A stretch of 63,915 nucleotides of DNA, the filler included, from Olpidium bornovanus S191 (lineage: Eukaryota > Fungi > Olpidiomycota): NCBI GenBank assembly GCA_017911155.1. It is 29 parts of 29 records of this genome, joined end to end, with 100 filler letters (N's around TTAATTAATTAA, not from the genome) between each part and the next. Parts side by side here need not be neighbours in the genome. Positions count along the whole stretch, not along the records: positions 24,680 to 27,749 come from JAEFCI010005186.1; 28 more parts are not named here. One strand, given 5' to 3'. Shown here piece by piece: positions 24,580 to 27,749 of the stretch. Every line of letters begins with the position of its first letter. The first letter of the stretch is position 1. The position numbers and the translations under genes were made by a program. Below the pieces are notes generated by a model. The model was given only the letters and a program-made list of their open reading frames with translations, was not told where the DNA came from and did no database searches.

Positions 24580-24764
24580 NNNNNNNNNNNNNNNNNNNNN
24601 NNNNNNNNNNNNNNNNNNNNNNNTTAATTAATTAANNNNNNNNNNNNNNNNNNNNNNNNNNNNNNNNNNNNNNNNNNNNGAAACTTCTTGCTTGACCGCC
24701 CCCCCAGCGGCGACAATTGCAAAAAAACACCGGCAGGGGGGGGGGGGGGGGGGGGGGGGTTTTC

Positions 24765-24811
<47 letters not shown>

Positions 24812-24995
24812 CTGTTCGGCGTAAAGCGCCCGGGCGAAGGTAGAATAAGCTTCGCCTCGCGCGGGCATAAAAGGCGCGCGCGCCCTCCGCCCGCCGCCCC
24901 TCCGCCCGCCGCTCGGAAACACCAACACAGAAACCGAGGGCGAAAAAGGAGGGAAAGGACGGAGAAGAAAGAAAAAGAAAAGGAAAAAAAAAAAG

Positions 24996-26994
24996 ATGGC
25001 GGTCGCCGCGCTCTCTTCCGCTGTGGCTGCGGCCACCGTGGCCGTCCGCGAGTACTGGCACGTTCCTGAAGCATGGCAGTCCGACAACATGCGCCGTGGT
25101 CTGCGTGTTAAACTTGAGGTGCGGACAGAGGCTGTTGCGGACAGAGGCGGGTCGAATTCACGGGCGTCGCCACATGCCGTGCCACACAAAGCGGAGGCAT
25201 GGAGGACCGAAGGCGGCTCTCCCGGGGTGCGTGTGGGCGCGGGTCTCTGACGGTTGGCCACCGGAGCAGAGGTCCCAAGCCCACAGCATTATCCGGGGGC
25301 CGCCGGACGTCCTTCTCGCGGAGGCTTCTTGTGGGCACGGCCGTGTGCGCGGGTTGTAGATGAAGTGGATGCTCGGAGGACCAAAGGTGGCTCTCCCGGC
25401 GTGCGTGCGGGCGCGGGTCTCTGACGGTTGGCCACCGGAGCAGAGGTCCCAAGCCCGCAGCATTATCTGGGGGCCGTCGGACGTCCTTCCAGCAGAAGCT
25501 TGCGTCTGCTGCCCAGCGACGGCGCAGAGGGCCGAAGGCAGCTCTCCCGGGGTGCGTGCGGGCGCGGGTCTCTGACGGTCCGCCACCGGAGCAGAGGTCC
25601 CAAGCGCGCAGCATCGTCCGGGGGCCGCTAAACGTCCTTCCTGCCGACGCTGCCTGCCGAAGCTGCTGCCCGTGGCCTTGTAGGTCTTTTTATCTGCGCG
25701 GTCTCGGACGGCCCCATGCCTGACGTGTTTCCCGATTTCCTTCTTTTCACGCCCCGGGGCAGATCTTGGTCAACTTTCTCGACAAGGTGACGGTGCCGGG
25801 GGCGTTGGAGGTGTTGCTTGCCGACCGGGAGGGCCTGCAGGATTGGTGCCAACACGCGTTTATCCTGGCCGGAGGAGACACGCGTGTGGGACCGACTCGG
25901 GGCCCTCCTCGGAGGTCGGGAGCTCCGCTACCCTCGGGTGCGACAAGCTTGGGGACGTTGGGCCAAGCCTGGGCGCCCGGGGGCCATGGCGCGTCGTCAG
26001 GGAGCCCCGGTCTGCTTCATCCTCCCGCACCGACCGGATCTGCGCGCCCGGTGCCTGGGGAAGTTCATGTCAAGCCTTCCGTGCGAGAAGGTGCCCACGA
26101 CCTCGGAATGCGTCTCCCTGTCGTCCCTGCGGGAGATCAATCCGGAGCGCAAGATTCAGGAATGCTGGATCTTCGATGCGGACACAATGGCGGTCGTCGG
26201 GGGCTTCCGGCAGAACTTCGCGACGACGACGACTTCGAACCGGTGGCACCGTAATTGCCAAGTTTTGCTTGAAACTCAGCTTGGAGTGAGCCGTTCGGCG
26301 TGCCGGCAGCACCGCGCTGGTGGGAAGATGGCTGGCTTTGGGCTGGCCAGTCCGCGGGGTGTGCGGGAGCTTCGCGAGTACCTCGCGAAGCCAGCTCTTC
26401 GAGCTGAGCCAGAAGGACTAGCTACGCGCGCCAATTGCACTGCGCAACATGGCCTTGTTTGCGAGTTTTTGTCCTACGTCAAAGCTCACGATTCGTGCCT
26501 GAGCGATGGGCTCTCGGCCTTCCACAAGGCTTTCCCTGCGGCGCTGCCGCCGATGTGGACGGCGCACAATTATCAGGTGAGATAGGTCTTGATTGCGCGT
26601 CTCCTTGTGCGGTTTAAAGACGCTTTGATCACGGGGGCTGACAAAAGCCATGCTGTTCGTCATTCTCGAGCCCCGCATGCACGTCGATCGCGACGCCAAT
26701 CACCTGTGCCTGGCTTTTTGCATGGAGGAGCCGGGCATTTCTGGAGGCGAATTCGTCTTGCCGGCCCGCGGCTTGTTCTTCAAGCTGGAGGACCACCTCC
26801 TGTTCTTCTTCGCAAACAAGGAGCCGCATGGGACGGCCGTCATGGACCTCCCGGAGGGCCATGAGGGCCGCTTGATGATGGCTCACGCGATTCCGCGGCG
26901 CCTGTGGTCATTTGTGACGACCAGAGGTTTTGGACCTGCGCCGGGTCTTCGGCGCTCTGAGCCTGGAGGCCGGTTACTCCGCAAGTGGTCATAG
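24996..26994 (+). CDS. TET/JBP-family 2OG-Fe(II) dioxygenase (putative nucleic-acid base oxidase); possible frameshift, so it may be a pseudogene
   Basis: Model: exons 24996-25118, 25763-26576 (frame change near 25850) and 26671-26994. Motifs are GKMAGFG, spliced TAHNYQ/PRMHVDRD (HxD at 26680-26688), GGEFVLP, HGT (26827) and GRLMM (Arg at 26869). His-to-His spacing is 49 aa and His-to-Arg 14 aa. Exon 1 is less certain than the catalytic exons. Confidence 0.75.
25201..25645. repeat. Three imperfect direct repeats of a ~115-bp core (periods 174 and 151 bp)
   Basis: The core GGCTCTCCCGG.GTGCGTG.GGGCGCGGGTCTCTGACGG...CCACCGGAGCAGAGGTCCCAAGC...CGTCCTTC starts near 25201, 25375 and 25526. Confidence 0.92.
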
Positions 26995-27139
26995 CCATGA
27001 TATTCGGCAGTAGATCGTCGGTGGCATCAAGGGCCGTGAGCGCCCCTAAGTGGATGTATCCGGGCTCGCCGATGAAGACGTTCTCAGACACTCTGAGCCC
27101 TTGGGCGATGACTCGACGCTTGTTTGAGGTGAGGAGCAG

Positions 27140-27749
27140 GTCGGGATTGCGGTCAAGGTATTCGGTGACGGTGTCTCGGGCATTGACGGGGTTTTCCTCG
27201 TCTTCCCAGGTGGCTTCGGACCTGTCGGAGCCAAGCCAAAGGACGAGGTATTGTTTTTTTTCTGCGCCGAATACGCTTCCCAATTACCGCTTCTACCTCG
27301 TACTCGTCGTTCTCGGAGCGCGGCCGGCTGACCTTCCTTCCTTTGCCCGGTTCCTCGTACTTCTGCAGGAGCGAGACGTGGAAGACAGGATGGATCTGGG
27401 CGAAGGGCGGAGGAAGTGCCAGTGTATAGTTGTCCTTTTTGTCTTTGTCGGTGACAAGAAAAGGGCCAACATAGGGCGCTGCGTATTTTCGGGATAGCAG
27501 TTTTTCCTCGTGCCGGAGTCCTTCTCGGAGAAGTGGATGTCTTTTCGCCGTGAGTTGCACGCCTTGGCTTGTCGTGCTTGAGCTCTCTTCAAGGCGTCCT
27601 GCGCCTTTTGGAGCTTGGCAGATAAATTGGCCAGGGGACTGTCCTTCCGGATGCCGTCGAGGCCACGAAGGTCGGTCCCGAAGGCCAACATATGTGGCGA
27701 CTCGCCGGTGATTGTGTGGGGCATCGCGTTGTGCGCGAATTCCAAGAGA
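27140..27749 (-). mobile_element. Chromovirus (Ty3/gypsy) integrase C-terminus plus chromodomain, frameshifted
   Basis: Reads NAMPHTITGESPHMLAFG...AQARQAKACNSRRK/YVGPFLVT...YTLALPPPFAQIHPVFHVSLLQKY (GPY/F module). This is followed by EYEVEAVIGKR/QYLVLWLGSDRSEATWEDEEN (chromodomain). Confidence 0.92.

Follow-up and report, generated by a model that had tools for sequence, protein, structure and literature searches.

The stretch of DNA analyzed here (the window; 63,915 nucleotides (nt), filler included) consists of 29 joined parts of the genome assembly of the fungus Olpidium bornovanus S191 (GCA_017911155.1). The piece at positions 24680-27749 (JAEFCI010005186.1) was read and translated in all frames. 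It contains an unannotated gene of three exons whose product resembles the TET/JBP dioxygenases of DNA bases, and next to it, on the opposite strand, the end of an integrase gene of the Ty3/gypsy type. Relatives of the gene are referred to by our own numbers (L001, P0001, and so on). The TET-like gene, with its predicted introns, is arranged in window positions as follows.

24866..24874, plus strand: TATA-like box CATAAAAGG, about 125 nt 5' of the ATG, read from the sequence.
24930..24995, plus strand: polypurine leader reaching the start codon; a comparable purine-rich leader precedes the ATG of L006.
24996..25118, plus strand: exon 1, 41 codons (MAVAAL...RVKLE), conserved at the protein level, with a GT donor at its end.
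25119..25762, plus strand: intron 1, 644 nt (GTGCGG...GGGCAG), bounded by GT and CAG, which fall at one and the same codon in four copies.
25763..26576, plus strand: exon 2, with GKMAGFG and, after a helical N-terminal region, the first strands of the fold, as judged from translation and model.
26577..26670, plus strand: intron 2, 94 nt (GTGAGA...CTCGAG), at a site common to 8 loci.
26671..26994, plus strand: exon 3, the predicted catalytic core, with H-V-D at 26680-26688, GGEFVLP, the His codon of H-G-T at 26827-26829, and an Arg codon at 26869-26871.
26971..27070, plus strand: copy-specific insertion of about 100 nt, the source of a premature stop, absent from L002, L003, L005, and L006.
27071..27127, plus strand: remnant of an acidic C-terminal tail, DEDVLRHSEPLGDDSTLV, with the stop codon TGA at 27125-27127; the tail is conserved in relatives.

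Splicing of the two introns, and with it the three-exon model, was predicted from the sequence and its relatives. Exon 1 is part of the first open reading frame (ORF; 24996-25250), and its 41 codons were conserved in L001, L005, L006, P0011, and P0021. It joins in phase 0 onto ILVNFLD... at 25763, directly after the CAG of intron 1, which measured 644 nt in the piece and 429, 373, and 447 nt in three relatives. Intron 2 lay at the same codon boundary in 8 loci, with measured lengths of 94, 87, 80, 83, 72, and 265 nt; the non-multiples of three among these lengths and the stops inside the intron argue that the pattern did not arise by chance. The copy in the piece contains a CTGAC branch-like site, and its excision joined ...PPMWTAHNYQ and PRMHVDRDAN in frame. 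P0019, a relative without intron 2, reads NYQPKTHQD and gives the junction directly. The first His of exon 3 (HVD) is at residue 4, the His of HGT follows 49 residues on, and the Arg comes 14 residues after that; the reading frame ends early at a TAG (26992-26994). The gene spread over three ORFs, the 94-nt intron, the upstream GKMAGFG, the GGEFVLP block, and the spacing of HGT and Arg had all been noticed in an earlier note on this DNA, and each was found again, the intron with the backing of the 8 loci and of P0019 and the first exon with that of its five conserved counterparts.

Upstream of the gene, the TATA-like box has a counterpart, GGGTATAAAAGG, in L006 and a similar one, AATAAGCTT...ATACAAAAAGG, at the same relative place in L001, and it is regarded as a putative promoter of the TET-like gene itself. 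Further upstream (24736-24811), at a distance of about 60-130 nt from the end of the contig, lie 24 consecutive G, then TTTTCG, and then 46 T, and L006 has a run of 11 T at a comparable place upstream of the promoter. The homopolymer of the piece could be a real expansion or an artifact of the assembly edge. Residues 1-110 of the protein (window 24996-25330) were predicted to be all-helical and are conserved in the family, without a Pfam match; they may serve in DNA binding. Intron 1 of the piece is enlarged by three tandem units of 139 nt (25189-25327, 25363-25501, and 25514-25652), the second and third sharing 89% and 83% identity with the first; in L001 the unit occurs once (1444-1558). The repeats and the homopolymers gave no tRNA or Rfam match, with only a chance sub-threshold CrcZ over poly-T. 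An exact look-up of a 114-amino acid ORF of the window found it not on record.

Residue conservation was counted in an alignment of 13 rows, in which H, GGEF, HGT, and R were the conserved columns. The His of HxD was kept in every row covering the site and the Asp in all rows except L005 (HIS). The distal His was kept in 12 of the 13 rows and the Arg in 10, the exceptions being decayed copies or one divergent row. In exon 3 of the piece these residues are H4-x-D6, H53, and R67. We predict that H-V-D...H-G-T forms a 2-His-1-carboxylate center, and the Arg would be the co-substrate-binding residue, its distance of 14 residues agreeing with the spacing of about 10-16 expected of the basic residue in TET/JBP dioxygenases. 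The closest solved protein by sequence was the TET homologue CMD1 of Chlamydomonas reinhardtii (PDB 7CY4-7CY8), which transfers a glyceryl group derived from vitamin C to 5-methylcytosine (5mC). A phmmer search of PDB sequences returned CMD1 as the best match with an E value of 0.03, which is not convincing alone; a profile of exon 3 and a profile of the whole family both retrieved CMD1 only, with E values of 4e-4 and 3e-4. The alignment of the family profile with CMD1 spans HxD, a GGEFVLP block that is identical in both, HGT, and the following Arg, and aligns His to His and Arg to Arg.

Searches of Pfam pointed in the same direction. At default settings the spliced protein of the piece gave no Tet match and noise only. 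When 26 family members were scanned singly, PF20515 (Tet-like 2-oxoglutarate (2OG)-Fe(II) oxygenase) was matched by 7 of them (best E 6e-5) and PF12851 (Tet_JBP) by 4 (best E 9e-4), each match covering the same C-terminal portion of the models; no oxygenase family other than these two appeared among the 26. When 1.84 billion protein representatives were scanned in full by HMMER with the single sequence, only 27 relatives were found, all unnamed or "hypothetical"; most were fragments ending at or starting after the intron-2 site, and none of the 27 was a named fungal TET or a protein of the transposon-borne types treated below. A word-indexed homologue search gave 3 matches with the single protein and 6 with a profile, and two scans of JGI metagenomes with the family alignments found nothing. 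It thus took sensitive methods to support the TET/JBP identity. In the Pfam check on the spliced protein itself no match rose above threshold; the members gave weak matches, to the two Tet families only. No unrelated 2OG family scored better, in Pfam or among the PDB sequences.

The assignment was also approached by structure. An AlphaFold2 model built from a 26-row alignment had a mean pLDDT (predicted local distance difference test) of 73 and a pTM (predicted template modeling score) of 0.57, with pLDDT values of 80-93 over the catalytic strands, and contained a strand-rich core around the triad. In a Foldseek comparison with the PDB, ranks 1-21 (E values from 1e-9 to 6e-6) were all CcTet of Coprinopsis cinerea (1.4e-9), CMD1 (5e-9), or human TET2 (2e-6). 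The first non-TET match was a prolyl hydroxylase (9e-6), and NgTet followed at 3e-5. The model comparison thus placed TET-family structures ahead of prolyl hydroxylases, and together with the weak Tet matches in Pfam and the profile match to CMD1 it bears out the initial assignment: the protein is supported, from sequence and model, as a TET/JBP-like dioxygenase of a very divergent branch. A different reading is that the protein is a 2OG/Fe(II) oxygenase acting not on DNA but on protein, RNA, or a small molecule, and that its TET likeness reflects the shared jelly-roll fold. Sequence similarity to the TET family is indeed weak and limited to the last third of the Pfam models, and prolyl hydroxylases also match the model with E values of about 1e-5. 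However, sequence searches found TET-family entries only, TET structures were ahead by 3-4 orders of magnitude, and the TET alignments covered 260-430 columns as compared with about 220-250 for the hydroxylases. Moreover, the GGEFVLP block is identical in CMD1, and linkage to transposable elements (TEs) fits the known biology of TET/JBP genes. We consider an oxygenase of non-DNA substrates highly improbable.

Among known systems, CMD1 was the sole solved protein found by sequence (E 3e-4), and in Foldseek (5e-9) it had the best root mean square deviation of the top matches (5-6 Å). It differs from the Olpidium family in that identity is only about 15-18%, in that it is much larger and encoded by a host gene, and in that it uses ascorbate instead of 2-oxoglutarate. 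CMD1-like ascorbate chemistry is conceivable in the Olpidium family. CcTet, grouped here with the AG-type TET proteins of Kyakuja/Zisupton elements (PF20515), gave the best Foldseek value (1.4e-9), the Olpidium family members gave weak PF20515 matches (best 6e-5), and on both sides the genes are fungal, multicopy, and TE-associated. The matches are, however, below the Pfam gathering score and identity is about 12-14%; the host belongs to Olpidiomycota rather than Dikarya, and the neighbor is a chromodomain integrase rather than a KDZ transposase. Asp337 of CcTet is important for the handling of 5mC and N6-methyladenine (6mA) (PMC12730594). The Olpidium family has no Asp nine residues after HxD, the position of Asp337, and the idea of the earlier note that 6mA might be the target finds no support in the sequence.

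TE-borne TET/JBP genes were classified by Kojima in 2025 into types PU, AG, and PE, found in eleven lineages of DNA transposons in rusts, mushrooms, and Pezizomycetes (PMC12730594). They were proposed to counter methylation-based silencing, and the same paper states explicitly that no retrotransposon carries a TET/JBP gene (PMC12730594). What the Olpidium family has in common with these types is a strongly diverged TET-like cargo, movement from one TE superfamily to another, and CMD1, CcTet, NgTet, and TET2 as the nearest structures. The PE type has HxE, whereas the Olpidium family has HxD (HIS in the row of L005).

The copy in the piece looks dead. In exon 2, frame 2 reads LVNFLDKVTVPGALEVLLADREGLQDWCQHA and frame 0 goes on as LSWPEETRVWDRLG, whereas the intact relative P0001 reads straight through as ..LQRWARRALGWPGDKDAWARIG. 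The frame change suspected near 25850 is thus real and corresponds to a +1 frameshift by one extra T in the T run at 25859-25861, as placed by comparison with P0001. The second lesion is the insertion of about 100 nt, which truncates the C-terminal tail. The insertion was rejected as a third intron because four relatives are without it and its ends are not GT/AG; its minus strand has no stop and extends the ORF in the pol frame to 26840. The acidic tail was conserved in L003, P0028, P0013, P0015, and P0018. Its remnant in the piece is out of reach of the reading frame, is 45 nt shorter than the tail of L003, and overlaps the opposite-strand pol frame at the 3' end of the latter. The O. bornovanus assembly is a metagenome bin from non-axenic zoospores, produced with Illumina reads and MEGAHIT (13,695 contigs, 29 Mb; PMC7865070). 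This origin accounts for the short contigs and makes a homopolymer sequencing error less likely as the cause of the frameshift; collapse of repeats in the assembly is possible.

The family occurs on at least nine contigs of O. bornovanus: among them are the piece, L002, L003, L005, L006, L007, and the contigs of P0011 and P0021, and that of L006 holds two loci. The closest proteins were hypothetical proteins of O. bornovanus itself. A multicopy family in an early-diverging fungus, as had been supposed, is therefore what we found. L002 has a frameshift and an acceptor changed from AG to AA; L003 is 5'-truncated; L005 has neither a start codon nor a donor for intron 2; L006 is frameshifted within a T8 run and has a premature stop; and L007 is a fragment. 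L001, a Logan contig (SRR30049181) with 65% identity, shows no interruption over the length that it covers. A second short TET-like fragment (residues 247-305) lies at 833-1009 of L006, inside the 873-residue NCBI model BJ554DRAFT_2733.

Selection was measured as Nei-Gojobori proportions from codon comparisons. Between the piece and L001, L002, L005, or L007, the proportion of nonsynonymous differences (pN) in the TET-like gene was 0.18-0.28 and that of synonymous differences (pS) was 0.63-0.74; the ratio is about 0.1-0.15, and synonymous sites are close to saturation. For the piece and L003, the youngest pair, the ratio was 0.41, as expected with recent decay. As judged from these codon comparisons, the TET-like family was functional for most of its history and was under purifying selection in the past.

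Two features of a Ty3/gypsy-type element follow on the other strand.

27149..27302, minus strand: chromodomain, the C-terminus of a Ty3/gypsy-type pol (Pfam Chromo, E 5.5e-7), with a frameshift near 27255-27262.
27357..27745, minus strand: C-terminal region of the integrase, SH3_Tf2-1 (GPY/F) (Pfam SH3_Tf2-1, E 3.2e-12), with a frameshift near 27518-27560.

The integrase is cut off by the end of the contig. The tail-to-tail arrangement of TET-like gene and integrase-chromodomain was seen in all five copies with a 3' flank (the piece, L002, L003, L005, and L006), with amino acid identities of 47-92% for the TET-like gene and 47-95% for the integrase part. The pol and TET-like frames of L003 overlap in antisense by the final dozen codons of each; elsewhere the stops lie within tens of nucleotides. 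The overlap at 1140-1260 of L003 (window 27071-27135), where the end of pol reads ..PLTSNKRR.. and the TET-like frame stops after ..TTLV, is an unusually tight convergence. The integrase part had a pN of 0.26-0.27 and a pS of 0.71-0.79, corresponding to past constraint. Divergence ran parallel in both genes, with a synonymous distance (dS) between the piece and L003 of 0.11 in the integrase and 0.14 in the TET-like gene. Because of this parallel divergence and the constraint on the integrase, the sequences fit one mobile unit that diversified into subfamilies, rather than independent insertions or a dead passenger.

It could be objected that the TET-like genes are a host family and that the neighbor is one old retrotransposon insertion co-copied by segmental duplication, without functional coupling. 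Every integrase part seen was partial or frameshifted, and no element termini were found, as this explanation would have it. Against it, the identical junction recurred in five copies differing by up to 53% in protein, and the integrase, unlike a dead passenger, was under constraint while the copies diverged. Furthermore, the two reading frames abut without a spacer, the copies are scattered, degenerate, and amid other TE debris, and relatives elsewhere are TE cargo. A host gene family is, in our judgment, improbable.

The gene models deposited for these contigs follow the element. BJ554DRAFT_7484 of NCBI (window 26629-27560, minus strand), the only gene model found on the contig, combines the integrase and chromodomain ORFs with an ORF antisense to exon 3 of the TET-like gene. 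The real TET-like gene is unannotated because this model runs through the antisense of its exon 3. The NCBI models P0002, P0003, and P0007 also read through introns or antisense TE sequence.

More distant relatives sit on other kinds of elements. An ENA contig (L004) has terminal inverted repeats (TIRs) of 77 nt at 485-561 and 5404-5480, which are 97% identical; between them lie a DUF6818 gene, a TET-like gene of two exons whose intron occupies the same site, and a transposase of the DDE_Tnp_4 (PIF/Harbinger) kind. A gene of the family is thus found between terminal repeats together with a transposase, as TE cargo. No target-site duplication was seen around these TIRs. The region 485-5480 of L004 is a PIF/Harbinger-type element of about 5 kb, and an integrase-like ORF (129-602) runs into its left TIR; the element may have been inserted into a retroelement. 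A JGI contig (L009, 3004-6278) carries a distant member that shares this intron site; its neighbor, in tail-to-tail orientation, is a hAT transposase (Dimer_Tnp_hAT, ZBED RNase-like), and no TIRs could be recognized there. On this sequence evidence the family is repeatedly the cargo of mobile elements, and because the intron site is shared, it would have moved between carriers as genomic DNA. The suspected link to KDZ transposons was not upheld: the neighbor in Olpidium is a chromodomain-integrase element, and the distant relatives are associated with Harbinger and hAT.

The nature of the Olpidium carrier was judged from its domains. SH3_Tf2-1 followed by a chromodomain was found in the piece, the same pair occurred in L006, and Integrase_H2C2 was present in the related L008. 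Chromoviruses have this pair at the end of pol, and long terminal repeat (LTR) elements with an extra antisense ORF after pol are known from plants; the Olpidium unit is similar in both respects, with its extra opposite-strand gene directly after pol. It differs in that the contigs of the Olpidium family, 1.5-10 kb long, showed no reverse transcriptase (RT), RNase H, gag, or LTRs. We know of no chromovirus that carries a DNA-base dioxygenase. All contigs end or are disrupted inside the integrase, and the upstream regions of four copies shared nothing beyond the promoter block, so that no element end could be defined. A position antisense to and after pol would let the two introns persist in a retroelement, since they would not be spliceable from the sense-strand genomic RNA. 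On this view the carrier would be a complete LTR retrotransposon. Our tentative proposal, to which we give somewhat less than an even chance, is that chromodomain Ty3/gypsy LTR retrotransposons of Olpidiomycota carry an antisense, intron-containing, fourth clade of TE-borne TET/JBP genes of HxD type, and that the family has also been exchanged with Harbinger and hAT elements in other eukaryotes.

The absence of RT and RNase H from the 600 nt upstream of the integrase zinc-binding domain of L008, and of LTR-sized direct repeats from the 9.9-kb L006, in which only short tandem repeats were seen, would also be expected if the carrier were a cut-and-paste or self-synthesizing DNA transposon with a gypsy-like integrase (Ginger or Maverick/Polinton type) and the TET-like gene an ordinary cargo as in Dikarya. 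All fungal TE-borne TET genes described so far do sit on DNA transposons, and the relatives of the family lie inside Harbinger and beside hAT. On the other hand, SH3_Tf2-1 followed by a C-terminal chromodomain is the arrangement of chromoviruses, and the nearest database relatives share the integrase/chromodomain set of Pfam domains, with RT_RNaseH also on record for P0101. L008 may be a 5'-truncated copy, and no TIRs were seen in the Olpidium loci. A DNA-transposon carrier is a live alternative, less likely than not but deserving more weight than a host gene family. The integrase/TET-like unit of L006 is bordered by minus-strand fragments of RT/RNase H and of gag-protease (4889-5777 and 8890-9654); these ORFs gave no Pfam match and are presumably copia-like, as we named them from motifs that we recognized. 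L006 is a nested or rearranged TE cluster, with about 2 kb of copia integrase and RT missing between the fragments.

We conclude that the locus is probably a decayed copy of a gene that is borne by a mobile element and encodes a divergent Fe(II)-dependent DNA-base dioxygenase of the TET/JBP type. Several findings weigh against this conclusion. Exon 3 alone matched PF20515 with an E value of 0.039 (14.4 bits versus a gathering score of 27) and PF12851 with 0.29, and no Pfam model reached its gathering score, the best family member attaining 23.6 bits versus 27. The AlphaFold2 model was built on 26 mostly fragmentary rows, and its TM-scores were just 0.40-0.47. None of the O. bornovanus copies inspected was intact, on account of frameshifts, lost splice sites, a lost start, or truncations, and the contigs stem from a binned metagenome of non-axenic zoospores. 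On these contigs of 1.5-10 kb no LTRs, primer-binding site or polypurine tract, RT, or RNase H was found. According to the proposed mechanism, the gene would be expressed from its own TATA-type promoter, would be spliced at two spliceosomal introns, and would encode the H-V-D...H-G-T iron center followed by the co-substrate Arg. In Olpidium it is carried in antisense, immediately after the chromodomain end of the Ty3/gypsy-type integrase gene, both genes having multiplied and diverged together. Intact copies would oxidize 5mC or another methylated DNA base, and this oxidation would let the element escape methylation-based silencing. By analogy with the TE-borne genes of other fungi, such anti-silencing oxidation is the most likely role of intact copies.

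TE-borne TET/JBP genes have been described so far only on DNA transposons of three Dikarya lineages (PMC12730594), and the Olpidium locus would extend them to the flagellated lineage closest to terrestrial fungi. The clade is too divergent for standard annotation, every member being "hypothetical" or unannotated, and the gene model of the contig, a pol tail read on through the antisense of the real gene, exemplifies an annotation trap. The locus is a candidate for the missing retrotransposon case. A genuine LTR retrotransposon as the carrier would be the first on record with a TET/JBP gene and the first known to encode an enzyme of the DNA demethylation type; should our tentative proposal hold, it would also be the first TE-borne TET outside Dikarya. 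The family may offer concrete enzymes for the oxidation of 5mC, 6mA, or thymine, or for CMD1-like ascorbate chemistry, in early-diverging fungi.

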